Shown: positions 17,621 to 56,137, counted from the first letter of the stretch. The stretch: 64,000 bases of DNA from Convolutriloba macropyga (GCF_964194025.1 NC_134468.1:83824001-83888000); one strand, 5' to 3'. The notes: generated by a model not told the origin, from the sequence alone. A program made the numbers and translations.

Positions 17621-18424
17621 TTTGTTCTTTTTCATTTTTATTTGACGCTATTTTAACCTTATCAATAATCTTTTTTTCTAAAGCGGACATAAATTTTGGA
17701 TGTAATTAATGTTTGTTGTGTTTGTTTGATTTTGCTGATCGTCTTGACTTGCCTTCCTAATAATAGTTGATCTCATCAATCTAATGCAACTTTTTTTTAC
17801 TCCACTGAGTCATTGGCTTCGGAGGCGATCTTTTTGTTCATACATTTTTTGAAGATTACTTGCAAAAAAAACTGAAATACTATCAGTTGTTCATTTGGTA
17901 GACATCTATGCCAAAAATTTGGATGAGCGGTGTCTGAACTTTATGTACAAACGCACATTACCAAGCCTCCTTGGTGGCTCCATTGTCTTTGGTTACTTGG
18001 CAGTGATACAGCTCGCTCCTGCTTGACAGTCGCAATATTTCGATACTTGGGTTGCTCTTGGGGTTTTCTGAAAGGGTTATGGGTTTTCTGACCATGTTTC
18101 CTAAAATGGTTTATTTCTGGTATAGGGTTTGCCAGATTCGGACCAGCATAGGGACAATTTATTTACCAGGAATGGACCCCAGAAACGGACCAGAGATATT
18201 CCTTACCAGAAACGGACCAAGATCGCCCAGAAATGGACCTTGACAAATCCCAGAAACGGACCTGACTATTTAGGGTTAGGGGATGGGTCCAGAAACGGAC
18301 CCTCGTGGAAAAATCCCCCAAAGGCCCTAAAAAGGTGGGAGTTGAACCCCAAACGTCTGAAATAACCACAAAACGCCTTTATAAACCAAAGAAAGTCCAA
18401 AATTGAAAGAATTCGTGGTTCTGT

Positions 18425-18730
18425 ATCATTTTGGTGCCCCTCCTCCTTTTTCATCCTGGGCTTAGGACCAGGCATTGGCGGAGTTACAACCGTTGTTTAA
18501 CAATTTTGAGTTTGGTGTCCCTCTTCCTTTCTCATCCTGGACTTGGGACCAGGCAACGGCGGAGTTGCCACCTTTTGTTTTGAAACTATTTTGGTGTCCC
18601 TCCCCCTTTCTCCTGGAATTGGGACCAGGCAATGGCGGAGTTACCACCTTTTGTTTTGAAACTGTTTTGGTGTCCCTCCTCCTTTCTCAACCTGGACATG
18701 GGACTAGGCAATGGCGGAGTTACCACCCAT
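18425..18730. repeat. ~76-82 bp tandem repeat x4
   Basis: TTTTGGTGTCCCTCCTCCTTTCTCATCCTGGACTTGGGACCAGGCAATGGCGGAGTTACC recurs; only one unit in the other element copy, at ~48544. Confidence 0.9.
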
Positions 18731-18784
18731 CCATATTTAATAGCGATGTCGATTTTTTACACCAATACATCCATTTTTTGCCAA

Positions 18785-19530
18785 GGATGTCGGGTGGCCT
18801 GCCTTCATTTGACAAAGGCAGATTTAGTCACCTGAACCATTTGGCGGGTTCAGAAAACTTTTCAGACCACAACCAGCGTTGTGATCTATTACTAAGCTGA
18901 CGGATGTCGGGTGGCCTGCCTTCATTTGACAAAGTCAGTTTCAGTTATCTGAACCAATTGGCGGGTTCAGAAAACTTTTCAGACCACAACCAGTGTTGTG
19001 ATCTATTACTCAGTTGACAAATGTCGGGTGGCCTGCCTTCATTTGACAAAGGCATTTTTATTCATCGGAACCAATTGGCGGGTTCAGACAACTTATCAGA
19101 TCACAACCAGCGTTGTGGTCTATTACTCTGCTGACGGATGTTGGGTGGCCTGCCTTCATTTGACAAAGGCAGTTTTAGTCATCTGAACCAATTGGCGGGT
19201 TCAGACAACTTTTCAGACCACAACCAGCGTTGTAATCTATTACCCAGCTGGCGGATGTCGGGTGGCCTGCCTTCATTTGACAAAGGCAGCTTCAGTTATC
19301 TGAACCAATTGGCGGATTCAGACAACTTTTCAGACCACAACCAGCGTTGTGATCTATTCCTCAGCTGACGGATGTCGGGTGGCCTGCCTTCATTTGACAA
19401 AGACAGTTTCAGTCATCTGAACCAATTGGCTGGTTCAGACAACTTTTCAGACCACAACCAGCGTTGTAATCTATTACCCAGCTGGCGGATGTCGGGTGGC
19501 CTGCCTTCATTTGACAACCAGAACCAGCGT
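18785..19530. repeat. 117-bp tandem array, 6 full units plus a partial unit, hairpin-rich
   Basis: GGATGTCGGGTGGCC-type starts at 18785, 18902, 19019, 19136, 19253, 19370 and 19487. Confidence 0.95.
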
Positions 19531-19559
19531 TTTTTGACGATGGATGTCGAGTGGCCTGC

Positions 19560-21216
19560 CTCTTTTTAACTGAGGCAATTTTCTCTTGTTTTGCAGCGTT
19601 TGACGATGTTGCCGGTAAGCTTACCAAGCCCTGGGTTGAATTCAGTTCTCCTCCCATCTTCGTCGTGTTTCCTCATCCTCGTCGAAGATCTCCTGGGGAA
19701 CCTGGGTTCCCCTCCTATCTTTGTCGTGTCTCCTCATCCTCGTCGAAGATCTCCTGGGGAACCTGGGTTCCCCTCCTATCTTTGTCGTGTCTCCTCATCC
19801 TCGTCGAAGATCTCCTGGGGAACCTGAGTTCCCCTCCTATCTTTGTCGTGTCTCCTCATCCTCGTCGAAGATCTCCCGGAGAACCTACCGTCGACCACTC
19901 GCTTGGGGTTCACTCACCAATCCATTTTCAGCAAGAGGACATCATAGAGGTTGATGTCGAAACCTCTCTACCAACCTACCTACCTACCTATCTACCTACC
20001 TACCTACCTACCTACCTACCTGCCTACCTACCTGCCTACCTACCTGCCTACCTACCTGCCTAACTACCTGCCTACCTACCTACCTGCCTAACTAACTACC
20101 TACTTATTTATCTAGCAACCTGTTCTCTGTCACTGCTGCCTTTCTTTCTTGCATGCCGTTGCTTTTTTCTTTGCTGTCTATCGCCGATACATGTCGTTGA
20201 TGCCTGTCGTTGCCGTCTGTCAATGTTGTCTGCTGTTGCAGTTTGTCTTTGCTGTCAGTTGTTGCAAGGTGTCGTTGTTGTATATAGTTGCTCTTCGCCG
20301 TTGTTGAATTGCGTTGCTTGCTGTCTTTTATCTATGTGGGTGCGTTCTCTCTCTCTCTCTCTCTCTCTCGGGTTTATGTCGTTGCTACCAGTCATTGCAG
20401 TTTGTTGTTTCTTTAGTTTTCCATGTTACTTAAAATCGATAGCCTGCTTCTTTTGGACTGAAACAGGCTTTATTGCAGCCTTTGACGATGCTGCCGATAA
20501 GCTTACCAAGCCCTGCGTCGAACTCGTTTCTCCTCCTATCTTCTTCGTGTTTCCTCATCCTCGTCGAAGATCTCCTGGGGAACCTGGGTTCCCCTCCTAT
20601 CTTTGTCGTGTCTCCTCATCCTCGTCGAAGATCTCCTAGGGAACCTGAGTTCCCCTCCTATCTTTGTCGTGTCTCCTCATCCTCGTCGAAGATCTCCCGG
20701 AGAACCTACCGTCGACCACTCGCTTGGGGTTCACTCACCAATCGATTTTCAGCAAGAGGACATCATAGAGGTTGATGTNNNNNNNNNNNNNNNNNNNNNN
20801 NNNNNNNNNNNNNNNNNNNNNNNNNNNNNNNNNNNNNNNNNNNNNNNNNNNNNNNNNNNNNNNNNNNNNNNNNNNNNNNNNNNNNNNNNNNNNNNNNNNN
20901 NNNNNNNNNNNNNNNNNNNNNNNNNNNNNNNNNNACCTACTTATTTATCTAGCAACCTGTTCTCTGTCACTGCTGCCTTTCTTTCTTGCATGCCGTTGCT
21001 TTTTTCTTTGCTGTCCGTCATTGCTGTCTATCGCCGATACATGTCGTTGATGCCTGTCGTTGCCGTCTGTCAATGTTGTCTGCTGTTGCAGTTTGTCTTT
21101 GCTGTCAGTTGTTGCAAGGTGTCGTTGTATATAGTTGCTCTTCGCCGTTGTTGAATTGCGTTGCTTGCTGTCTTTTATCTATTTTCGTTGCTTGCTGTCT
21201 TTTATCTATGTGGGTG

Positions 21217-21247
<31 letters not shown>

Positions 21248-21555
21248 GGGTTTATGTCGTTGCTGCCAGTCATTGCAGTTTGTTGTTTCTTTAGTTTTCC
21301 ATGTTACTTAAAATCGATAGCCTGCCTCTTTTGGACTGAAACAGGCTTTATTGCAGCCTTTGACGATGCTGCCGATAAGCTTACCAAGCCCTGCGTCGAA
21401 CTCGGTTCTCCTCCTATCTTCTTCGTGTTTCCTCATCCTCGTCGAAGACCTCCCGGGGAACCGAAGTTCCCCTCCCATCGTCGTGTCTCCTCATCCTCGT
21501 CGAAGATTTCCCGGAGAACCTACCGTCGAACATTCGCTTGGGGTTCACTCACCGT
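19560..21555. repeat. Higher-order ~880-bp triplication containing 61-bp subrepeats, (CCTA)n and (CT)n
   Basis: AAGCTTACCAAGCCCTG at ~19617, 20499 and 21377; 61-bp unit with GGGGAACCTGGGTTCCCC; (CCTA)n at 19970-20103; gap at 20779-20934. Confidence 0.9.
20779..20934. other. Assembly gap (probably a CCTA microsatellite)
   Basis: Run of N at the position equivalent to (CCTA)n in the preceding unit. Confidence 0.95.
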
Positions 21556-24500
21556 ATTCAAATTATCATCTGCAAAATATGCTTGTCCTATCATCACCAA
21601 TTGACAGATGAAGGTAACTGGTGTCGTAGCTGTCGTTGTCTTTGGGAGTTCAAGCTGTGTTCATGTTGAAGTCGTTGCTGTTGCTTCTAATTAGTTGTTG
21701 TCGTCACTGTCTTCGTTGTACTTCATTTGTTGGTGCTGTTCATGACTTTGCTGCTGCTGTTGCTGTATTGTCGCTGTTGCTTTCATATCGCTGTTGTTGT
21801 CGTTGTTGTTTTCGTCGTCGCAGATATCGTACATAGGAGTCCCTCCTCCTTATCTCATCCTGCGCTTGGGAACAGGCAATGGCGGAGTTTCCTCCCTCCC
21901 TCCTTTTTCTGGTTTTTTCTTTTTCTATTTTTTTGTCTTTTGTGGGTTCTATTTTTTCCCTTTTTCTCTTTTCTTTGTGGGTTCTCTTTTTTTGCTTCTC
22001 TTTTTTGGATTTTCTTCTTTTTTCTTTCTTCTTTTGCGGGTTCTATTTTTCCCTTTTTTTTCTTTTTTGTGGTTTCTTTCCCTTTCATTTTGATTGAAAA
22101 GTAAATAAACGTGTTGACAGTTTTATAAAAATTTACAAGTTAATGCGTCGACTATAACTGATCACAAATAACAAATAGTGAGCATTCTTTCCGAAGTAAA
22201 ACATAAAGCAATAAAATTACTGTTGCAAGTAATCAAATAAGATGAGTAAATCCGAAGATTAAATAACCTAGGTATTTTCAAAACTTTTCTTCATCAAGAA
22301 TGCTTACAATTTGCTCCACCAAATAATCATCAGTTTAACAAAATAAAATAAGAAGTTTGAATTTCTGTTTTGAGTTGAGTTTGGTTTTCAATCACTATCT
22401 CTGGTCTGTTTCGCGAAGTGTTTGTCAACTACTTTGTTTAGAGTATTGAGAGCGGCTAGGTGCATCGGTAACCGGAATCTCTGAATAGTTGAGAGAAGTT
22501 AACTCGCTTTGACCTAAATCGTAAGTACAGTCGTGCACATAGATTGTAATCCTCGTTGGACAATTGATATCGTTGTTGACTTGAACGTTAATTTCTTGTT
22601 TTCAATGGCTTTGCTACTTTTTCCTCTGTCAGTTCTTCATCTTCATCCTCCTCGTCTGATGCTGCGAAACTTTGCTGTTCCTGAGTCATCTCAGTTTCAG
22701 AATTTTCGTCGTTACTGTAACTTTCGCAAGTGTATTCAATGGCTGGTTGGTTGTTTTCCGCTATTTCGTCTCGAGATGATCCTTGTGTTGACTCGATGGC
22801 TGGTGTTTTGTCCTTCTCGGTAAGGTTCTCAATCATGAGGCTGGTGAATGCTGCGTTCTCCGCTTTTTGTCGTTCAAGGTTGTTATAGGAGGTTACACAA
22901 AATAAAATTGCACTTTTTCTTTCTAAACTTTTGCTGTAGGAAGCAAATATTCCTAAAGAAACGAATTACTTTCAAGTATTCTGTATTCTGTCCGCCTGAG
23001 GGGTTTATATAGGCATCCAATGTGTTTTTAAAATATATTTTCCAACTCCCCATATTTCCTAAAATTTTGCTGTAGGAAGCTAAAATACCTGGAGAAACTA
23101 AATACTCTCAAGTAATCTATATATTATGGCATCCTGAAAGGTTTATAAACAAGGCGTCTAATATGTATGAAAACTATATTTTCAAACTCCCCTGATATAG
23201 GAGATTATATCAATTTATTAAATTTGCACTTTTTGGTCCAAGATTGGTAAGATAACATGAACAGGTATGATTGTTTTATTCATAAGATAACGAATATTGG
23301 CTCAAAATGCTTTATATATAGCTCATTGTGAAGCTTTTTTTTATAAACTTTGCAGCCATGTTTTTTCCTTATATCAATGTTGTTTGTGAAGGTGCCTAAA
23401 ACGGCATCAAACACACAACAGAAATCGAGTCAATTTTGACTTGATAAACAGTGGCTATTTCCGACACCCTATAATAATGGTACAGGTAAAATTTTGAAAA
23501 GCTATTGATTAGATAAGAGGGCGAGGTTTAAAAAACTAGCACTTTTTGACCGTTTAGGTACGTTTATGGTACCTGTAGTGCTTAGGTCCAAGATTGGTAA
23601 GACACCACTTGTGATTGTTTTACTCATAAGGTAACAAATGTTGGCTTAAAATGGTTCATGTATAGCTCATTTTAAAGCTATATTAATAAGCTTTGCAGCA
23701 GAGTATAATACTCTCAACAGATGTTGGCTGGAAATGTACCTAAAATGGCATCAAGCATAAAAGAAAAATCGAGACAATTATTACTTGGCAAATAGTGGCT
23801 AAGTCCGCCCACTTTTAGGAATGGTACCATAGCCCTATATAAAGTTTTGAAGTCTCCTTGTATAGACAATTGCGCGACATTAAATTTTTTTTATGACCAT
23901 TTGGGTGCGTTTATGCCTTCTAGAAGCACTGGTTACCGAGTTGAATGTCCGACTTTTATTTGATGTGAAATTTCTCCACGAATATTGGCTCAAATGAGTT
24001 GATCGATAGCTCATTTTAAAGCCTGGCATCTCTTTGTAGCCATATAGTTTGTAAGATCTTCGGGTGGATGTAACTATCAATTTTGGGCAGGAACGTCAAT
24101 TTTTAGATATCGCCCTAAAAATTTTTCTAAACACCAGATGAGTTGACCACCTTACCAGGATATTCTAATAACAAATCATATATGGTTGCAAAGCTACTGA
24201 GCTTTAGTTTACGTAGATATACAAAAAATTGACAATAAACACCTGGGAACTACTTCAAATCTAGGCCAGAACGCATATTTCATTTCTTGAAAAGGTGACT
24301 TTGTCTTTCATGGCAAAGTTTATCAACAAATATTGGTCCAAAAGCAACAATATCTAGCTAATTTTAAAGCTTTTGAAACATACTTTGCGCTCATGCAATA
24401 AAAAAAATAGGCTTTTACAAGCTTTTTTGTGGACTTTTCACTCAGTGAGCTGTATGCAATGTTTGCCAAATAAGCGCAGCAACTTTTGGTCATGAACCAT

Positions 24501-25047
24501 TTTTTTGGCTATAATATTGTAGTAATGACCTAGGGGCTGCAAATTTAGAATTTTTCCTGGCCGGAACCGTTGCCTGTTTATCAAAAAGTAGTTTAGAAGT
24601 TGATCTATGACGAATTGTACAAAAAAAAGTCCGAACTCGCGAAAATTTTTTTCGAAGTTGAGCTCCAATAAGTCAACAAATACTGAACCGATTTTGTTGA
24701 TATATAGCTTGTTGTAAAGCTTGATTGAAACTGTACGACGCATTTAAAGGATATTGCTCTATCTTGCAGAGAAGTTAATGAAATGACCTCCAGAACGCGA
24801 AGTGGTCCGATCTCCGCTATACCAGAAACGGACCACAAGAGGGTAACGTTCCCCTAAACCGTAAAAAGTGCAACTTAGCGCCCGAATTTGAAACAAATAG
24901 CATGGCTGAATTCCTCGTCGAAAAACAGTCAGTTATGCCAAATTTCAGAATCGGGGATTTTACTTGTCTTCAAAGTACAATCTGCCTAATAAGGTCAGGT
25001 TGTATTATAACTTCGGATTTTTGAGGTTCAGTGACAAGTGATGTTTT

Positions 25048-25207
25048 NNNNNNNNNNNNNNNNNNNNNNNNNNNNNNNNNNNNNNNNNNNNNNNNNNNNN
25101 NNNNNNNNNNNNNNNNNNNNNNNNNNNNNNNNNNNNNNNNNNNNNNNNNNNNNNNNNNNNNNNNNNNNNNNNNNNNNNNNNNNNNNNNNNNNNNNNNNNN
25201 NNNNNNN
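25048..25207. other. Assembly gap
   Basis: Run of N. Confidence 1.
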
Positions 25208-28205
25208 AAGAAGAACAATGAGCCAAACCCCCAACTCGATCCGTCCACTAGAAGTGGAGATATTAACAAAATTATAACTGACTTTAGGGAAACAAAATTT
25301 TGGTTAATTTGAGGCACTTCCCTTGCGAATTTCTTAATGAAACCGGTACCTGCGTTCTCTCAAGCAACCCTGTTGACTCAAGCTTTAAAAAAGACAGGAA
25401 GTGGTCGAAAATTTTGACATGCAGAAAACCCCACTCCTTTCCAGATTCGGACCATGTTTAGGATTTGAACCCCAAAAATCAATAATCTTCACTTCCCTCA
25501 GCAAGTTTATATCAGTTAGCTATAGCTGGCAAAATTATCAGGCGTCACTGTCCACCGATTTGTTTCCTTCTGACTTTTCTTGCTATTGTCCGTGGTCTGA
25601 AGATAATAAGGAAACATTAACAAAGTTTAACTCAAACTCAGGCAGAAGAGTCAAAAGATACCAAACAACAGAGCATAACTTACTTTTCAGTTTTCAAGGC
25701 AAGACAAAGACAATTATACATAACGTTTAACTGTAATTTTGGAAGAGTTTTTAAAATTTTGTTGAGTAATTGAAATAACTTAATGCTTTTGTTAGAAATG
25801 AGTTCGATTAAAGACTTGAGAGATAAAAACATAAGAAAATGGACACTGACAGTTTTCATGTTGACTCAGTTTTGTATTTTTTGCGCCGTTTTTCGTGTGT
25901 CTCTCTCTCTCTCTCTCGCACCATAAAGTTAAGCTCTGTTTTTTGCTGCAAACAACTTTCCCTTTTTTAGCCCGACCTCCCATTCAATCTGAAAAATCCT
26001 TTGAGTAAGTTCAAAGCCTATTTTGTCAAGCGTCCGATCAAAAGGAATCAGACTCAGTGTCAGAAAATTAACCATTCCCTTTTCATTAGTTATTTTTCGG
26101 TCGGTGTTTTATATCTTTACAAACTAAGAGGTTTTCACTTTTTTATGTAGCTTGTCCGCTACCTTACTGATTTCCACATTTCTGTGGAGCCATCGGCATT
26201 TTTGTCATAATTTGAATGCAGTTATACCTGGGTAGATACTGTTGTCGCGAAACACGCTATCGCTTAATGTAGCAGTCTGGTTAACTCTCAATTTGCCGTT
26301 TTATGTTTGAGCCGATGTTCGACTGGACATCAGTTCTGCCATTAGATTCTCTCGAAATGGGAATTATGCTTTAGTCGAACACCCGCAGCTGCTATCTGAC
26401 AAATATCAACTTTGTATGTTTTTCTCTGGCAACGGTGGGTTTTTCTTAATATATTTGGCTTCACAGTTTTTGGTTAATGGGCTGTGTTCCAGCACACTTT
26501 TGCTTGATTTACCCATATCGGATAATTTTTTGAAAATAACTCGAGATTTTTCCACCCAAGAATTAATCAATTTGTGTTCCCTCATCAAGGCAATATCAGC
26601 AGAAGCTGGCAGAAAATTGTGCTTATACACTGATTTGTATGATAAAATCTATCTTGCCAGCGTTCATGGTCTGTTAAAACAAGGGAAAATTAGCACAATA
26701 ATAAAAAATTAAGGAACAGAAAAATAAAAATACTGTACCAAACAACAGAACAAAACACTTTTTCAATCGTTGAAACGAAGAAACGGAGACAAATGAACAT
26801 TTTTTTCATACCGATTAATAGTGGGGTTGTTAGAAGAGCAAATTTTAATATGAGAAGAGTTAGTTGTTAGAAGAGTTGTGAAAATTTTAATATGCCAATT
26901 TCTCTCATAGCTAAGTTTTGGAAACTTGACTTTTTGACTTCTTGTTTACAAAATTAGAAGTTAGAAGAGAGCATCGGAAGTACGCTCGGTGTTAACCCTA
27001 CAATGGTATTGTAAATGCAAGTTGGTGGAGTTCTCAGCAAGTCTTGTATTTCAATTTATAATTGATCCATTTTTTAAAAGTTGTCAACAATATTTGAGCA
27101 ATTCCGCGCAGTCTGGAATTGTTTACTGTGCCACGAGTGCCTTCTTCTGTTATTTATTTTGTTTTTTTTTCCGCGGAGCAAATGAAACGCAGTCAGTCTA
27201 TGTGAAATTGTGGACTGATTAAAATAAGTGATCGTATATCCCTGCCTGCATTTACGATAAGTTGACAGGTCAATTTTGTGCAGTTTTCGGTACATAATCG
27301 AGTACTGCGTGGAACGAGACTTAATCGATTATTGAAAACTATAAGTAATGATAAAACAGGTAAAATACTCCCCCCTCCCATGTCTTGCTTTAACTATACT
27401 ACTGACAGGAAAGAAGCGGTTAAAAGCAAAATAGAAAAACTTGATTATTTTTCCAGACCAGGACGTGCGGTGAACAGCATTGAGATTTTAGCCGACTCTT
27501 TTGAAATGTCACCGAGGAGTAACCAAGTGCATCAATTTTTTTTATTGACACATTTCTAACTGCCATCTTGAACATAATAGATCAGTTCTAAGTCCACTGC
27601 AAACTAATATTTGCGCGACCTGTTCTTGTATGTGTGTGATAGAGAGATGTTTGAAGTCCTTGTGGATATATCTTAATCCCTCCTTACCCCTACTTGACTT
27701 GCTGTTGTAAGCGCTGAAACCTTTCGTTTGAATTTAATTGACTTGAAACCTTTGCTTTATTTGCTATTGTTCCCGTACAATTGAATATCATATTATTCAT
27801 CGTTCTGCTGTTCGTAATTTCAATAGTTATTAAAATAGATGTAACCTTGTCTTTCAGAGTTGCAATGGTTGTGACAGATTGACAAATGGTCGAATATAAC
27901 CTTGGACATGGTTGACTACTAAGTTATGGTTTGAAATAGTCCGAAATTCTCTTAGGAATTAACAAAATGAAGTACAATTGAAAGGTGACCTTTGGCACGT
28001 CCTGGACGCTCTCTTCTGTCGCTGATTAACTGTCGGCGCTATTTACCCAATCAGTTATGTAATCACCTCTGAACAATAAAAGGTCCCCAATTAAGTTTAC
28101 TCTCTGTTATCGAAGAGGTAGATTTGAGTGTACGTGACCGTGTTTCACACGTGGTAGATTGACTTACACACGAGAGCGGTGTAGACTGTGAGAGAGAAAT
28201 AAATA

Positions 28206-47545: not shown

Positions 47546-48844
47546 AAATTTGTAATGAAGTTTTTGGATCGATTTCTATAAGCACTTAATAAATTACCTT
47601 CAATGGTGACTTGAAATTAAATTGTCTAATATGTATCCTTTAAAACATATTACGATCATTTGAACCTTGCATTTCTGTGGTGTGGAAGTTAAGGATTACT
47701 GTTCACAGTAGGTAGAAAAACGTCAACTACTTAGATTAATAAGTAAACACTTGTGAAGAACACCACCCGTTAGAGTCTGCAATACTGATTTCATCATAGT
47801 TTTAGAGGCAACACAAAAGTGGCGAGTCCAGTCTTTGGCATTCTATACAAAATGACGTGATTGCATCTCTTTCCGCTTCTTTTTGTCCAATACGAACAGC
47901 TCTGTCAATTTTTTCATCCCGTTATTAAAAAACTTTGTCGTTGAGTTGCTCTTATTTTTTTATGTCTTCAGCAGAAATCGGCCACTGCGCCATCAAATTG
48001 AGCAACAACCTGCTTTGTTCATTTAGCATTATGATCAAATGTTGAAGGGAATTTCATGCTTAAAATTTCATGCTAAAATCAACGTGGCCGAAGAGATATA
48101 TGTCAGTACTGGGCACAGACGAAAGTCGATAGTTATCACCGTTCGCCAATACGTGTACTACGTCTCATAGTCGCACTCCTTTTTAAATCCATAGCCGATC
48201 AAGCTTAAGGGTTAGGGTAAACATGGTTCGTTTCTGATATAGCGGCCCTCGGATTCGGACCTGCCTAGGAACGATCTCTAGCATCAGGAATGGACCTCGA
48301 AACGGACCGGGAATTCCTAATCAGAAATGGACCACAAATCCTCAGAAATGGACCTTGACAGATTTTCAGATACGGACATCACTTTTGGGCTCAGGGGAAC
48401 GGATCGAAAACGGACCCTCGTAGAAAAATCCCCAAAAGCCCTAAAAAAGTGGGAATTGAATCCCAAACGTGTGAAATGATCACAAAAGGCTTTTACAAAC
48501 CAAAGTAAGTCCGATAATGAAAGAATTTGTGGTTCTTGTATCATTTTGGTAGCCCTCCTCCTTTCTCATCCTGGACTTGGGACCAGGCAATGGCGGAGTT
48601 ACCACCCATCGACATTTAATGGCGATGTCGATATTCTACCCCAAGACATCCCTATTTTGCGAAGGATGTCGTGTGGCCTGCCCTTTTAGACAAAGGCAGT
48701 TTCAGTCATCTGAACCAGTTAGCGGGTTCAGACAACTCTTGAGACCACAACAAGCGTCTGTTTTTGATGTTTGTCGATGTGTATCGGTGCTCTTTGTTGT
48801 TCTTGCATTTTGTTGCTTGCTGTGTTTGATGTTTTTGAGTGCGC

Positions 48845-48882
<38 letters not shown>

Positions 48883-50299
48883 GTATGTCGTTGCTGTATG
48901 CCATTGCCGTTTGATAAGCATTTAGTTTTCCTTGTCAATTAATGTCGATTAGCCTGCATCTTTCTGACTGAAACAGGCTTTTTGCAGCCTTTGACGATGC
49001 TGCCGGTGAGCTTACCAAGCCCTGGGTCGAACTCGGTTCTCCTCCCATCTTCGTCGCGTTTCCTCATCCTCGTGGAAGACCTCCCGGGGAACAGAAATTC
49101 CCCTCCCATCTTCGTCGGGTCTCCTCATCCCCGTTGAAGATCTCCCGGAGAACCTACCGTCGATTACTCGCTTGGGGTTCACTCACCGTATCCAAATTGT
49201 TTTCTGCGAAATGTGTTTGTCCTATCTGCACCAATTGACAGATACAGATTACTTTTGTTGTAGTTTTCGTTGTCTTTGGGAGTCCAAGCTCTGTTCATGC
49301 TGAAGTTGTTGATGTTGCTTTGAATTCGTTGTTGTTGTCGTCGTTGTATTTCATTTATTGGTGCTGTTCATAACGTTGCTGCTGCTGTTCTTGTTGTCGT
49401 TGTCGCTTTGAAGTCGTTGTTGTTGTCTCGTCGGTCGAATAAATCGTACATGGAAGTCCCACCTCCTTATCTCATCCTGCGCTTGAGAGAAGGCAATGGC
49501 AGAGTTCCCTCCCGTCCTCCCGTTTTTTTTTCGTTTTTTCATCTTTTTTATTTTTCTTTTGTGGGTTCTTTTTTCCTTTCTCTTTTTTTGGATTTTCTTT
49601 TTTCTCTTTTTTTTTTCTCTTTTTTTGGAATTTCTTTTTTCTCTTTTTTTGCGGGTTCTATCTTTTCCCCTTTTTTTCTTTCTTCTTTCGTGGGTTCTCT
49701 CTTTTCCCTTTCATTTTGATTGAATTACTGCATTGACTATAACTGTTTACAAATAACAAATAGTGAGCATTCCTTCCGAAGTAATACATAAAACAATAAA
49801 ATTAATGTTGCAAGTAATCAAATAGGAATGACTAAAACCAAAAATGCAAATTTTTTTGTCAAGAATGCTTACAATTTGTTCCAAATTATCATCAGCTTAG
49901 CAAAATGAAATTAGAAGTTTGAATTTTTGTTTCGATTTTATTTCCCAAGCACAATCTCCTCCGTTCGGGTTCTGGAAATGCTTGTCAACTACTTTGAAAA
50001 GAGTTTTGAGAGCGACTGGGTTCATCGGTAATCCGGAATCTCTGAATAGTTGAGAGACGTTGCAACGAGAGTCGTGCACATAGATTGTAATCTTCGTTGG
50101 ACAATTGATATCGTTGTTGAGAAGAACGCTGTTTTCTTGTTCTCAAGAACTTTGCAGCGGTTTCCTCTGTCAGTTCTTCATCTTCCTCTGATCCATCGTC
50201 GTCGTCGTCAAATTTTCGCAACTTTTTTGTTCCTCAGGCCTCTGTGTCAGAATTATTGTCATTACTGTCACTTTCCCAAGAGTATTCAATGGCTGGCTG

Positions 50300-51480
50300 G
50301 TTGTTATCCACTATTTCGTCTCGCGATGTCCTTGAGTTGACTCGATGACTGGTGCTTCGTCTTTCTCGGCAAAGTTCTCAATCATCAGGGTGGTAAAAGC
50401 TGCGTTTTCCGCTTTCTGACGTTTAAGATTGTAATGCGCTTGGGCTGTCTCGGCCCGGTGTCCCAAGTGTTGATGTGCTCGCTCACGGTCAATTGGGTTA
50501 CTTACCTTCTCGCAGATTTGTTATAAGCTTTCGATAGATGGTCGAATTGAACATCAGTTTTTGAAATCCGTGCTGGATTAGGATGCTGGCATGAAATCGG
50601 CTACAAAATTGTTTTCGATAATCATATGATAGGTTTTCTTTGGCGTCGAATGGCGCAAATAGAAAAATGTGTTCTTTCTCCATTTTTGTTCTGACGTCTT
50701 TGAACTTCAGAATTAATTTCAGCTCCGATTTTTTCACTACTTGGAATCTTATTCCATCACAAAAAAGTTTGAATGTGATTTTTCGAGCAAATTCACTATT
50801 TTTTGCCGTCTCTCTCTTTCAGCGGGTCATTTTCTTACCGACATTTTAGATTTCGGTGCGAATTGAATAGCGAAACGGTCGGTTGCTGCCGAATAGATAA
50901 GATTAGATTCATCAAGATATTCAGTTCGAATTGTTGTGACGGTTCCACTTCTGGATGCGTTTCGGAAAATGATCATGGCAACCAGGTTAATAATAACTAG
51001 AGTAAAATCTTTTCTGTCCAGTTCTTGCACCTCGTTCTTCAATTTGTTTTACAAGTACGCAACTACGGCTTTGTTCAGTTTTTTTACTTCCTCCATGGTT
51101 GGTAACATGTTTGCTGTTGCCCTCTTTGCGATTCGTTGCCTCGCTTTTTCCCCTTTTTGTTCGCGTCTAATGAGCTGGTCAATTTGTCCAATAAAGACTG
51201 GAAAATTTACTAAATTTGAATTAGAGGCTATTGATGGGCACAAAAATTCGTTAAGGAACACTTTCAAAAGATGCAAACTATTTCGCCTTGTTGTAGCTGC
51301 TCTCATTTGAGGGTACGAATCTAACCATTGTGAAATTTTGGTTGCATTTTGCAGCTCTTTTGTTGGAATAATGGCTTCACGAAGTCTTTTAGTACGTTCG
51401 TTGACATTTGATAACTTCCAGTCATGTTGCTTTCCTTCAATTATATCTTTTCGCATTTGCTGTTCGTATTCTGTAAACAA
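50300..51480 (-). pseudogene. Tyrosine recombinase, frameshifted
   Basis: Catalytic motifs in the expected order: MIIFRNASRSGTV (first Arg), FNSTIYRKLIT (xxR), and after a frameshift HQHLGHRAETAQAHY (His...Tyr) at ~50430-50475. Confidence 0.85.
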
Positions 51481-54455
51481 TGAATTGAAATCACCCTTCC
51501 TTCTGGAATCTTTTAACGTTTGAGGTATCTACTCTATTGAGAGGTATCTACTCTAGCTTGATCAAAAATGAAGTTTGGGAGATCGGAAATTGTGATGATT
51601 GGTTTTTCAAACAAAATCGGCTCGTGATTATTTGATGCCCGGTTGCATTTGTGTCGGAATTTCTGGTCGCATAGTTCATTACACTGCACACAAAGATAGT
51701 ATTTGTTTCGATTTTTACCAGGATGTGTCCTTTTTGAATGACTTTTAGAATTTTTGGATCATTCAAGGAATGAACTCAGTCCTAATGTCTTTTCATTGTG
51801 TGTTTGTTAAACCAAGTCCTTCATAAAAAAAGTGACATTTGAACATTTTTTCACAGTCGTCAGACTCCTGGCTTGGTGCACTTTCAGTTTGGGTTTCATT
51901 TTCGTCCGTTTCTGATTGTGTTGATCGCTCTGAACTGCTAGATCTCATATCTCTCATGCGTTTTCGATCACGACAAATCTCGAATAAGGTAGGGCTTCTG
52001 TTTACACCTTTAAACATCGATTTAGACGGTCCAGGAATATCAGAAGGCTGTTTTGCATTTTGTTGAAGTCTTTTCAGTTTCTTCTTTGTCTTCTGGGTAT
52101 ATAGTATGGATAAAATACTGATTGAATGTGATGAACTGATTGAATGTGATGTCGCATATCAATGAAATAATGTTTTTTTGAAATTTTGACGCAATGCATG
52201 CAGCCAATCAGAAAAGGTATTCGTTTACCGTTTTTAAAGAACGGTTTCACTTTGAATGCTTTGTTGGGGCAGCATAGTTGATGATCGATAAATTCTTCAA
52301 GAAAGTACAATGGCATTTCACAGTAGAGGCAAAATCCCTGAAGATTTCCAAATTCGTCCGGTACAGCATCTCTTTCATGTCTGGTTTCCTGAATCTTCCG
52401 CTGAATCTTCGTTTCCATTTTCTCATACAACTGTTGATAACGCTGCTTGGTTTTTCCAGGTTTCAGGTTTTTCTTGCTCCTTGACTCGTTTCCGGGGTGA
52501 TGGTCCTCATCGTCGTCATCTGCCTTGTTGTGTTTTTTGCTTTCCTTATTTCGTGGGTTTTTTAAATCAAAAGCAATCAAAAGGTGACCATCTTTATCAC
52601 ACTTCGGTTGTCTCCAGATTACAGAACTTGAAGTCGGAATTGTTTGCATCTCGCTCGTTTCTTGGTTTTGTGGTAGGGTCGTGGTTGAAGTCTTTGACCA
52701 AAAAGTTGATGGCTTTTTCGTTAACTCTGGCATACTGATAGGTTAACTATTAATCGTTGCTGTTGGTTTTCGTGTAAGCTCTGTTAAGTTGCCTTGAACA
52801 TTTGTTTTCGTCACATCGACATTCTGATTGTTGCATCGCCATGGAAGATCGTTCCCACCGTAATCATAAACCAATTCCTCGTCCTTTTGGATCTCGGTTA
52901 AGGCAATGAATTTTAGCTTGATCAAAAATGAAGTTTGGGAGATCGGAAATTGTGATGCTGCTTTCCTTCAATTATATCCTTTCGCATTTGCTGTTCGTAT
53001 TCTGTAAACAATGAATTGAAATCATCCTTCCTTCTGGAATCTTTTACACTTTTGAGGTATCTACTCGTTTGAGAGGTATCTACTCTAGCTTGATCAAAAA
53101 TGAAGTTTGGGAGATCGGAAATTGTGATGATTGGTTTTTCAAACCAAATCGGCTCGTGATTATTTGATGCCCGGTTGTATTTGTGTCGGAATTTCTGGTC
53201 GCATAGTTCATTACACCGCACACAAAGATAGTAATTGTTTTTGTTTCGATTTTTTAGCAGGATGTGCCCTTTTTGAATGACTTTTAGAATTTTTGGATCA
53301 TTCAAAGAATGAACTCAGTCCTAATGTCTTTTCATTGTGTTTGTTAAACCAAGTCCTTCATAAAAAAGTGACATTTGAACATTTTTTCACAGTCGTCAGA
53401 CTCCTGGCTTGGAGCACTTTCAGTTTGGGTTTCATTTTCGTCCGTTTCTGATTGTGTTGATCGCTCTGAACTGCTAGATCTCATATCTCTCATGCGTTTT
53501 CGATCACGACAAATCTCGAATAAGGTAGGGCTTCTGTTTACACCTTTAAACATCGATTTAGACGGTCCAGGAATATCAGAAGGCTGGTTTGCATTTTGTT
53601 GAAGTCTTTTTTCAGTTTCTTCTTTGTCTTCTGGGTATATAGTATAGATAAAATACTGATTGAATGTGATGAACTGATTGAATGTGATGTCGCATATCAA
53701 TGAAATAATGTTTTTTTTTTGAAATTTTGACGCAATGCATGCAGCCAATCAGAAAAGGTATTCGTTTACCGTTTTTAAAGAACGGTTTCACTTTGAATGC
53801 TTTGTTGGGGCAGCATGGTTGATGATCGATAAATTCTTCAAGAAAGTACAATGGCATTTCACAGTAGAGGCAAAATACCTGAAGATTTCCAAATTCGTCC
53901 GGTACAGCATCTCTTTCATGTCTGGTTTCCTGAATCTTCCGCTGAATCTTCGTTTCCATTTTCTCATACAACTGTTGATAACGCTGCTTGGTTTTTCCAG
54001 GTTTCAGGTTTTTCTTGCTCCTTAACTCGTTTCCGGGGTGATGGTCCTCATCGTCGTCATCTGCCTCGTTGTGTTTTTTGCTTTCCTTATTTCGTGGGTT
54101 TTTTAAATCAAAAGCAATCAAAACGTGACCATCTTTATCACACTTCGGTTGTCTCCAGATTACAGAACTTGAAGTCGGAATTGTTTGCATCTCGCTCGTT
54201 TCTTGGTTTTGTGGTAGGGTCGTGGTTGAAGTCTTTGACCCAAAAGTTGATGGCTTTTTCGTTAACTCTGGCATACTGATAGGTTGACTATTAATCGTTG
54301 CTGTTGGTTTTCGTGTAAGCTCTGTTAAGTTGCCTTGAACATTTGTTTTCGTCACATCGACATTCTTATTGTTGCATCGCCATGGAAGATCGTTCCCACC
54401 GTAATCATAAAACAATTCCTCGTCCTTTTGGATCTCGGTTAAGGCAATGAATTTT
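51425..54455. repeat. ~1.53-kb direct tandem duplication inside the element (Zn-finger/linker region)
   Basis: ORF pairs 52074-52733 / 53612-54415 and 51793-52017 / 53344-53748 are nearly identical over their shared parts. Confidence 0.95.
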
Positions 54456-54790
54456 CTGTTTTTGTTTCAATTTATCGGTATGAATTCTAGGCGCAATGTT
54501 GGGTCTTCTCCCAATTCCACAATCGTTTATGAGTCTTGCAAACCCCTCTGAGTTTTTTCCGTCGATGTAAAATTTCCACGACTTGTTGAAGAAGATGTAA
54601 TCGATGTCGTTTTGACTTGACTTTGCTTGAAATTGCGCGAGGATAAAAAAAACGAGCATTTTTTGTCCATTTAGGTGCGTTTATGCCTTCTAGAAGCACT
54701 GGCCCTAAAAATTTTTGTGAACACCAGATGAGTTGACCACCTTACCAGGATATTCTAATAACAAATCATATATGGTTGCAAAGCTACTGA
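54385..54790 (-). pseudogene. SET domain (lysine methyltransferase-like), frameshifted
   Basis: LLLEYPGKVV, YIDGKNSEGFARLINDC...PN and FIALTEIQKDEELxYDYGGNDLPWR; the last segment is repeated at 52835-52915. Confidence 0.88.
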
Positions 54791-56137
54791 GCTGTAGTTT
54801 ACGTAGATATAAAAAAATTGACAATAAACTGGGCACTATTTCAAATCTAGGCCAGAACTCATTTTTTGGAAAGGTGACTTTGTCTTTCATGGCAAATTTT
54901 CTCAACAAATATGGGTCCAAAAGCAACAATATATAGCTCATTTTAAAGATTATGAAACATACTTGGCTCTCGTGCAATAAAAAATAGGTTTTTACAAGCT
55001 TTTTTGTGGACTTTCCACTTAGTGAGCTGTATGCAATGTTTGCCAAATAAACGCAGCAACTTGTGGTCATGAACAATTTTTTTGGCTATAATAATGTAGT
55101 AATGACCTAGGGGGCTGCAAATTGGAATTTTTCCTGACCCGAACCGTTGCCTGTTTATCAAAAAGTGGCTTAAAAGTTGATCTATGACGAATTTTAAAAA
55201 AAGTCCGAACTCCCCGAAATTTTTTCGAAGTTGAGCTCCAATAAGTCAACAAATACTGAACCCATTTTGTTGATATATAGATTGTTGTAAAGCTTGATTA
55301 AAACTCTACGACAGATTCAAAGGATTTTGCTCTTTCTTGCAGAGAAGTTATTGAAATGACCTCCAGAACGCGAAGTGGTCCGATCTTCGCTATACCAGAA
55401 ACGGACCACGAGGGTAACGTTCCCCTAAACCGTAAAAAGTGCAACTTATCGCCCGAATTTGTTAAAACAAATAGCATGGTTGAATTCCTCGTCGAAAAAT
55501 AGCCAGATATGCCAAGTTTCAGTATCGGGGATTTGCTCCTTGTTATCAAAGTACAATCTGCGTAATTAGGTCAGGTCGCATTGTAACTTCGGATTTTTGG
55601 GGTTCAGTGAGAAGTGATATTTTTTTAGGGGGAACCGATATAATGATATATATGGCTGTAAAGCTCTGTTCAAAAGAAGAACAATGAGCCAAACCCTAAC
55701 TCGATCCGTCCACTAGAAGTGGAGATATGAACAAAAAAGTTACCGGTTTTAGGGGAGCAAAATTTTGGCTAATTTGAGGCACTTCCCGTGCGATTTTCTT
55801 AAATGAAACCGGTATCTGCGTTCTCCTCTCAAGCAACCCTGTAGAACCTGCTAACAAAAGCACAAATTTATTAGTTAGTTTTTGAGAAAAACGTTCCCCT
55901 AAAGTGGCTCGAATTCGGACCCTCGCGAAATCGGATGACCAAATATCGTCATCTAATGCTCCCTTCGTCCTGGGAAAGTGGAGGGTAGGCTTATTTTTCA
56001 ATGCTGAGTTGACCGAAGGTAGGTTCAGCTCACAGAACCCACAGGAAGTGGTCGAAAACTTTGACATGCAGAAATTCCCGACCCTACTCAGTTTCGGACC
56101 ATGTTTAGGATTTAGATGCTAATTTTTTCTATCACGG

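Follow-up and report, generated by a model that had tools for sequence, protein, structure and literature searches.

A decayed SET-recombinase element in Convolutriloba macropyga

The 64,000-nucleotide stretch of the Convolutriloba macropyga genome analyzed here (GCF_964194025.1, NC_134468.1:83824001-83888000; hereafter the window, from whose first letter all positions are counted) carries, on its minus strand at 48218..56113, the remains of a mobile element whose coding part combines a SET domain, Cys/His fingers, and a tyrosine recombinase. In a three-frame translation, the SET, finger, helical, and recombinase motifs quoted in the original prediction, which had been made from the sequence alone, all fall on the minus strand in the order it gave, far beyond chance. 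The limits it proposed (48215-56112) likewise agree with the repeat-unit boundaries (48218-56113) obtained by comparing two copies of the element in the window. The copy described here, copy 1, is ~7.9 kb long (~6.4 kb without an internal duplication), and its extent is given by sharp limits of similarity to copy 2 and by collinearity with intact relatives and with locus L003, where the DNA of a decayed copy aligns collinearly with the window element. Copy 1 is a decayed copy of the autonomous type.

Read in the sense of the gene, copy 1 begins with a 5′ noncoding part in common with copy 2 (55086..56087, minus strand), which holds a single open reading frame (ORF) without a recognized domain. 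The SET domain follows in pieces, its N-terminal piece (..DLLLEYPGKVV..; 54708..54860, minus) lying in a frame that spans 55085..54708 and lacking the GxG region, which alignment with the relatives identifies as lost, and its middle piece (YIDGKN..GFARLINDCGIGRRPN; 54408..54680, minus) containing ARLINDC..RPN. An intron after LLEYPG was considered, and a good GTAAGG donor is present, but between it and the next conserved residues no AG could serve as acceptor. The SET C terminus (DEELFYDYGGNDLPWR), a low-complexity linker, and the first Cys/His finger block (CLYC..H..C, C..C..H...H) occupy 53615..54466 (minus) in a frame that differs from that of the SET middle piece, and three-frame translation of 54466..53615 reads EELFYDYGGNDLPWR and then the CxxC/HxxxH fingers. 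An acidic, Ser-rich stretch and a second finger block, spread over two frames, continue into the start of the recombinase (52925..53748, minus). Both of these stretches belong to the upstream copy of a duplicated segment, the downstream unit of which (51421..52914, no strand assigned) repeats the SET C terminus, the linker, and the fingers. Self-comparison of the window defines this as a 1.5-kb tandem duplication (51421-52914 = 52952-54455; 97.3% identical over 1,507 bp), because of which the SET C terminus and the finger block are present twice in copy 1.

The recombinase opens with an N-terminal helical domain of the core-binding type (51052..51528, minus; 159 amino acids open), which an in-frame stop at 51049-51051 cuts from the first catalytic piece (50830..51048, minus) with the first catalytic Arg motif, FRNASRSGT. 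A second, frameshifted piece (50501..50818, minus) comprises the beta-hairpin region, in which the family-invariant HKNF..GxK is altered, and the TxxR box (STIYRK), and in the third piece (50314..50520, minus) the frame is restored and GH-x8-Y (LGHRAETAQAHY) is read with the nucleophile Tyr. At 49900..50233 (minus) follow, divided between two frames, an acidic stretch and the conserved tail of the protein, which is a small helical domain at its C terminus, and the 3′ noncoding part (48238..49899, minus) consists of Lys/Glu-rich low-complexity DNA and of 61-bp and other satellites, with subterminal GAAA(C/T)GGACC repeats at 48238-48420 just inside the 3′ end. Frame changes fall near 50760, 50515, and 54440 and within the tail. 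With its stops, frameshifts, and internal duplication, copy 1 is a dead relic of which no function is expected.

Some of the noncoding satellites (window 48544-48606 and 48979-49207; L003 12703-12925 and 16299-16790) are 87-97% identical between elements, unlike the coding parts of the window and L003 elements, which are just 65-70% identical. Either these repeats are constrained, possibly as protein-binding sites, or they have spread independently.

Intact relatives and single-gene architecture

Searched individually, 10 window pieces gave no relevant match in Pfam, window pieces gave no match among PDB sequences, and a word-index protein search with a 284-amino-acid window piece gave no match in its length range. 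Since the single pieces match no Pfam family, the domain identity of copy 1 rests on its intact relatives. An HMMER scan with the 159-amino-acid helical piece against 1.84 billion representative proteins returned 13 proteins (best E 7.5e-33), all from ENA assemblies, and word and profile searches brought further close kin. Five of the relatives (P0007, P0014, P0015, P0016, and P0017; 1,068-1,193 amino acids) are each encoded by one uninterrupted ORF on its contig, with an N-terminal SET domain, the same finger blocks, and a region homologous to the helical and recombinase pieces of the window. The intact copies that had been looked for thus exist among the relatives, and the proposal of one long polyprotein of a mobile element holds, with SET, fingers, and recombinase joined in one ORF in all five; in the more distant P0012 and P0018, a SET-like ORF lies just upstream of a separate recombinase ORF. 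Compared with the window by tblastn, the intact proteins give collinear matches from the SET C terminus through the tail, with E values of 1e-53 to 1e-65 for the recombinase part (frames -2/-1/-2) and of 1e-9 to 1e-13 for the fingers. The encoded protein is thus one of ~1,100-1,200 amino acids, made up of a SET domain, two Cys/His finger blocks, a two-domain recombinase, and a small helical tail.

In the intact elements, the SET-finger-recombinase gene is the only recognizable one, the other called ORFs having no Pfam match, and neither a reverse transcriptase nor a DDE transposase was found in them. The combination of reverse transcriptase and RNase H that marks DIRS, Ngaro, and PAT elements was likewise found neither in the window element nor in the intact relatives, and reverse transcriptase (RVT) matches in L003 and L010 fall outside the elements. 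The relatives occur in many copies, together with deletion derivatives, in each assembly.

Several of these proteins are mosaics. P0014 combines a SET region identical to that of P0015 with the recombinase of P0007 (synonymous divergence, dS, 0.008), and P0007 and P0017 have the SET region in common while the remainder differs. As judged from the ORFs of L001, L002, L005, L006, and L007, such subfamily mosaics indicate frequent recombination between co-resident elements. At L008 (1740-7392), the SET-less relative P0009 adjoins a double-jelly-roll capsid gene and a weak Pox_A32 ATPase match, genes that are a Polinton-like or virophage-like insert, and a short (CCCTAA)n sequence, CTATAACTCAG, lies on either side of the P0009 element.

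A predicted Cre/Xer-type tyrosine recombinase

Profile searches were silent on the C-terminal half of the protein. A profile of the recombinase family found no recombinase among PDB sequences, in Pfam at E values up to 10, or in PHROGs, and six acoel-type catalytic regions matched neither PF12012 (DUF3504) nor PF00589 at E values up to 10. Despite the missing profile match, the family may be distantly related to the Crypton tyrosine recombinases.

The predicted structure was far more informative. For an AlphaFold2 model of residues 560-950 of P0007, built with the family alignment (mean predicted local distance difference test score, pLDDT, 78.7), the best 50 Foldseek matches were all tyrosine recombinases, one protelomerase included (Cre, XerA, XerH, lambda Int, Flp, Tn1549 Int, and TelA). 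With VIA-align, the two domains together reached Z scores of 10-11 to Cre, XerA, and XerH, and the catalytic domain alone aligned with XerD at Z 9.8 (root-mean-square deviation of 3.7 Å over 159 residues), type IB topoisomerases coming next. In nine aligned proteins, the R of RNxxRxGT, the K of KNF..GxKxQ, TxxR, GH, and Y are invariant, and the spacing R-(25)-H-(8)-Y equals that of the Cre residues R292, W315, and Y324. Judged by this model and these motifs, the C-terminal half is most probably a two-domain tyrosine recombinase of the Cre/Xer type.

A profile search also brought up a multicopy set of ~1,090-amino-acid proteins in the pipefish Vanacampus margaritifer, so that the statement in the original prediction that other animals have similar SET-recombinase ORFs proved correct. 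These proteins have a SET domain (E 2e-19) and match the Pfam family Phage_integrase (PF00589) at E 3.7e-5, below the curated cut-off; aligned with the acoel recombinase profile, they give an hhalign E value of 7.7e-4 and exhibit the same RxGG/E, TxxR, and GH..YY motifs. The pipefish proteins are thus independent support, at the level of sequence, for the recombinase assignment. Of the two profiles by which the domains were expected to be recognized, PF00856 (SET) passes in the intact relatives, and PF00589 is absent from the acoel-type proteins and sub-threshold in the pipefish. At one pipefish locus (L012; GCA_051991255.1, CM124230.1 1747598-1778927), the SET-recombinase gene model is spliced, contains internal 24-amino-acid tandem repeats, and lies antisense within an intron of a host gene. 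Sister pipefish models are labeled as NCK2a isoforms and are probably chimeric or fused gene models.

The SET domain is maintained within the element

The SET domain of P0007 matches PF00856 with E 3.6e-14 and 53.5 bits (cut-off 22.4), and that of P0025 reaches 70.2 bits; the window pieces align with these domains but are too fragmentary to score by themselves. The best matches among solved structures are all to KMT5A/SETD8 (E ~1e-8), ahead of those to the MLL, ASH1L, and EZH2 types. In place of the canonical Asn-His-Ser, Asn-Asp-Cys is found in every lineage, the window included (INDC; VND in the very distant L009), and the NDC to which the original prediction had drawn attention is accordingly a conserved trait of the family and not a mark of decay. 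The Tyr of E-E-[LI]-x-Y-D-Y is also kept across lineages, and with the Asp conserved in this way, methyltransferase activity may be retained, changed, or lost. With H4K20 monomethyltransferase KMT5A (SETD8, PR-Set7), the element SET domain has in common its compact form ending in ELxYDYG, in addition to the best structure match; it differs in its sequence (~25-30% identity), in the Asp that replaces the His of the NHS motif throughout the element family, and in being fused to a recombinase.

Between subfamilies, differences at synonymous sites (pS) of ~0.9, i.e., at saturation, stand against differences at nonsynonymous sites (pN) of ~0.30 in the SET domain, and for the recombinase the values are pS 0.87 and pN 0.23. 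These values point clearly to purifying selection on both domains in the relatives. Selection thus keeps the SET domain within the element, which the domain therefore serves. Most likely, it would bind or methylate a histone tail (H4K20-type) in the chromatin that the element enters; the original prediction had suggested that it may counter silencing or mark targets.

A second copy and the ends of the element

Self-comparison of the window revealed a second copy of the element in the same orientation (copy 2; 18102..25466, minus strand). This copy retains both ends (78-90% identical to those of copy 1), the LLEYPG piece, and the C-terminal tail, and ~1 kb of unrelated DNA stands in place of the SET C terminus, the fingers, and the recombinase. 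It also holds two runs of N, and its 3′-side satellites are strongly expanded (18.5-21.5 kb). Copy 2 lies ~30 kb upstream of copy 1, with a ROCO gene between the two.

Similarity between the copies starts and stops abruptly at the element limits, where terminal inverted repeats are found. The 5′ repeat (TAAACATGGTCCGAAACTGA; 56088..56107, minus) is matched at 16 of 20 positions by the 3′ repeat (TAAACATGGTTCGTTTCTGA in the plus-strand reading; 48218..48237, plus), and the 20-bp consensus TAAACATGGTyCGwwwCTGA describes the repeats at 48218-48237, 56107-56088, and 25460-25441. The 6 bases outside the 5′ repeat (56108-56113, AAATCC in sense) are also present in copy 2. The window and three subfamilies of the relatives have inverted repeats of 20-27 bp, and a search of L003-L010 for the end repeat of the window type gave no convincing match. 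At 18088-18120, a 13-nucleotide fragment resembling the opposite end repeat (CTGACCATGTTTC) adjoins the 3′ end of copy 2 with 1-2 bases between them, an arrangement that looks like a head-to-tail or circle-junction remnant; a GGGTTA-like sequence follows immediately past the fragment.

The sharp ends, the inverted repeats, and the deletion derivative identify a mobile element and not a host pseudogene. One could still suppose that there is no transposon of its own here, and that the remains are those of a host gene, namely a domesticated SET-recombinase fusion, or of a SET pseudogene lying by chance next to an unrelated recombinase element: the single window pieces match no Pfam family, the window copy is heavily broken, and annotation treats the pipefish homologues as normal genes with splicing. 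Against this, five relatives and the pipefish have the domains in this order within one ORF, the window holds two copies with defined ends, and the assemblies of the relatives contain multiple copies with deletion derivatives. We therefore regard a host-gene or chance origin as highly improbable.

Association with telomeric repeats

At the loci with intact ORFs, (CCCTAA)n follows directly after the 3′ end of the element on the sense strand of the ORF. A terminus abuts such a tract exactly in six loci of the relatives, five of them with an intact ORF (L001, L002/L011, L005, L006, L007, and L009). The tracts measure from 18 bp to 1.8 kb, and their orientation relative to the ORF is always identical. 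Individual tracts are 173 and 815 bp long at L001; 654, 405, 318, and more than 490 bp at L002/L011; more than 1.1 kb at L005; 1.8 kb at L007; and 96 bp at L009, and three units are present at L006. At L008, tracts of 48 and 36 bp lie near both ends, each separated from the inverted repeat by 7-25 bp of telomere-like sequence.

At L002/L011, each tract runs in whole CCCTAA units from the 3′ inverted repeat that closes one element (..TGGCTAGGC) to the 5′ inverted repeat that opens its neighbor (GCCTAGCCA..). Because every tract is bracketed in this way by the repeats of its neighbors, the first 33 kb of this 905-kb contig are an element/tract array, with one intact copy and deleted copies. With ends of the L001, L002, and L005 types, the downstream tract opens with a whole CCCTAA unit in the same phase, and CCTA, part of the telomere unit, starts five end types, counting the window 5′ end with its two shared outside bases.

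In the window itself, a telomere-like flank, TTAAGGGTTAGGG (48205..48217, plus), abuts the 3′ end of copy 1, the junction reading in sense ..CCATGTTTA on the element side and CCCTAACCCTTAA beyond it. Copy 1 thus keeps ...TTTA followed by CCCTAACCCT at its 3′ end, i.e., 1.7 telomere units in the phase seen in the relatives. The sequence AGGGTTAGGG occurs twice in the 64-kb window, where 0.02 occurrences are expected, once at the copy 1 3′ junction and once in copy 2, ~170 bp inward of its 3′ end. The latter, a telomere-like dimer at 18272-18281, corresponds in copy 1 to a degenerate spot at 48380-48400 (TTTGGGCTCAGGGG). This telomere-repeat association, like copy 2, the 20-bp inverted repeats, and the 1.5-kb duplication, goes beyond the original prediction.

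These junctions bear on what moves the element. A DDE transposase could act on the inverted repeats with a TA target duplication, the recombinase-like protein being a passenger or a resolvase, as might be suggested by the ~20-bp inverted repeats of both window copies, which have TA as their outermost bases at either end. A Crypton within a TIR/TA element, that is, one bounded by terminal inverted repeats (TIR) and TA, has been described in MarCry-1_FO, a Mariner-Crypton composite that carries a Crypton recombinase inside a TIR-bounded element (PMC3212892). In MarCry-1_FO, the DDE transposase does the moving, whereas no DDE or other transposase domain is present in any intact SET-recombinase element. 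In addition, the inverted repeats of the other subfamilies (GCCTAGCC.., CCTTAGCC.., and TCCTAGTT..) are flanked by CCCTAA units and not by TA, and the recombinase is under purifying selection. Movement by a DDE enzyme is hence very unlikely, and the lack of a DDE domain together with the CCCTAA-flanked ends also speaks against membership in Tc1/mariner-type or other DDE families with inverted repeats.

The telomere link could also be secondary, if subtelomeric copies of a recombinase transposon had accumulated and multiplied through break-induced replication or homologous recombination instead of through site-specific integration. The model for this would be the yeast Y′ elements, which likewise form tandem copies with short telomere tracts between them at chromosome ends; Y′ elements encode a helicase, have neither a recombinase nor inverted repeats, and spread by homologous recombination. 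Full and deleted copies with telomere tracts between them within 33 kb of contig ends, the mosaic structure of the subfamilies through recombination, and the several loci without telomere repeats would all fit such an origin. It accounts less well for the junctions between inverted repeat and CCCTAA, which are exact and in phase in three subfamilies; for the interstitial copies at telomere-like sequences of 10-96 bp (the window with 1.7 units, L006 with 3 units, L008, and L009); and for the outermost CCTA common to five end types, as a crossover core would predict. The exact junctions and the interstitial cases speak against homologous recombination as the sole cause of the arrays, and a merely secondary link seems to us rather unlikely.

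A possible mechanism of movement

We consider it probable, at roughly 0.7, that the dead copy 1, with its internal duplication, belongs to a Crypton-like DNA transposon that has a single gene and a tyrosine recombinase, telomeric repeats being its probable target. On the analogy of Cryptons and bacterial recombinase elements (PMC3212892), the recombinase would cut the element out in circular form, its joined inverted repeats flanking a short overlap. For an element of the L002 type, the circle junction would read ..TGGCTAGGC / CCCTAA / GCCTAGCCA.., i.e., it would have the classical arrangement of inverted arms around an asymmetric core of 6-8 bp. The circle would then integrate in one orientation into telomeric hexamer repeats, at any unit with the same core, with the shared CCTA/CCCTAA bases as the crossover region. 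Repeated integration would produce element/telomere-tract arrays at chromosome ends, and occasional copies, such as copy 1, would be seeded at short internal telomere-like sequences. Core-matched integration would thus explain the fixed orientation, the in-phase junctions, the arrays, and the interstitial copies.

A more far-reaching version of this scheme is possible and clearly more tentative. The family would then be one of DNA transposons whose Cre-like recombinase uses one position and orientation in the TTAGGG repeat and builds arrays like those of SART/TRAS or HeT-A, and whose selected, H4K20-methyltransferase-like SET domain acts on telomeric chromatin, either shaping it or hiding the element in heterochromatin.

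Several points weigh against a telomere-targeting recombinase transposon as the source of copy 1: (i) The assignment of the acoel-type recombinase rests on a predicted fold and motifs, and the HxxR box reads TxxR throughout, in 9/9 aligned proteins as well as in STIYRK of the window copy and STQLRK of the pipefish protein. (ii) Activity of the SET domain is doubtful a priori, as judged from the replaced His of the NHS motif. (iii) The window holds just two copies, which leaves some doubt about where exactly the element ends and whether there is a target duplication; both have AAATCC beyond the 5′ repeat, and the 3′ flank of copy 2 is an inverted-repeat fragment of 13 nucleotides with no clean telomere unit. 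(iv) Telomeric repeats were absent from the fetched flanks of L003, L004, and L010, and likewise from those of the pipefish copy (L012). (v) Element/telomere-tract arrays could also grow through homologous recombination at chromosome ends. (vi) The C-terminal tail could not be identified as a telomere-binding Myb/telobox domain, the VIA-align Z scores of 5-6 to homeodomain, SANT, and Myb three-helix folds standing amid unrelated helical proteins and within noise; Foldseek gave no match for the tail model (best E 2.7).

Relationship to known systems and implications

Crypton DNA transposons, reportedly described by Goodwin in 2003 and treated by Kojima and Jurka in 2011 (PMC3212892), are the closest in their way of working: the present element is likewise a DNA element without reverse transcriptase in which a tyrosine recombinase is the sole mobility enzyme, and circular excision with site-specific integration through short shared sequences is proposed for it. 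Cryptons are described as having no terminal inverted repeats and as bearing short (4-6 bp) direct repeats at their termini (PMC3212892). The present element differs in its 20-27-bp terminal inverted repeats, in the lack of detectable DUF3504 similarity, in a Thr in place of the first His of the R-H-R-Y tetrad, and in an N-terminal SET domain, of which none of the papers searched makes mention; its flanking direct telomere units could equal the short direct repeats of Cryptons, the two being indistinguishable within a repeat array. The earlier label of a Crypton-like element thus stands as regards the tyrosine recombinase and the lack of another transposase, and it is weakened by the 20-bp inverted repeats, the missing DUF3504 match, and the change from HxxR to TxxR. 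The single hint at something similar that the literature search brought up is a citation of CryptonV elements (Kapitonov and Jurka, Repbase Reports 2012) as "target-site specific" cnidarian elements that insert into microsatellites (PMC8869645). A telomeric hexamer array is a microsatellite, and such insertion, compared by this description only, fits an element next to (CCCTAA)n. The element works like a Crypton but misses three defining features, and its membership in Crypton or CryptonV is unproven.

Among systems at telomeres, the telomere-repeat-specific non-LTR retrotransposons SART1 and TRAS1 of Bombyx and terminal elements such as HeT-A and TART and the Terminons of rotifers resemble it in two ways: the insertion has a fixed position and orientation in the telomeric repeat, and elements alternate with telomere tracts in arrays close to chromosome ends. 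They differ in being retroelements, whereas the element here is DNA with a recombinase and without reverse transcriptase; telomere-repeat retroelements act via an endonuclease and reverse transcriptase or via end attachment. A target class of telomere-repeat-specific retrotransposons is mentioned in PMC8869645. SETMAR likewise unites a SET domain and a transposition enzyme in one protein, but it is a single-copy primate host gene built on a DDE (mariner) transposase, whereas here the fusion is the single gene of the element itself. A literature search found no paper that connects SET domains or telomeric repeats with an element of the tyrosine-recombinase type.

For genome annotation, the SET-recombinase element explains mis-annotated "uncharacterized" or chimeric animal gene models, such as the NCK2a isoforms of the pipefish. 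No feature of the family is more informative than its association with telomeric repeats. To our knowledge, homing to telomeric repeats has so far been found only in retroelements, and transposons with a chromatin-modifying enzyme of their own are rare. If the proposed targeting is true, this would be the first known family of DNA (non-retro) transposons that homes to telomeric repeats and would provide a naturally occurring recombinase whose target is a defined 6-bp repeat, and whether a mobile element writes a histone mark at its landing site would become a testable question.

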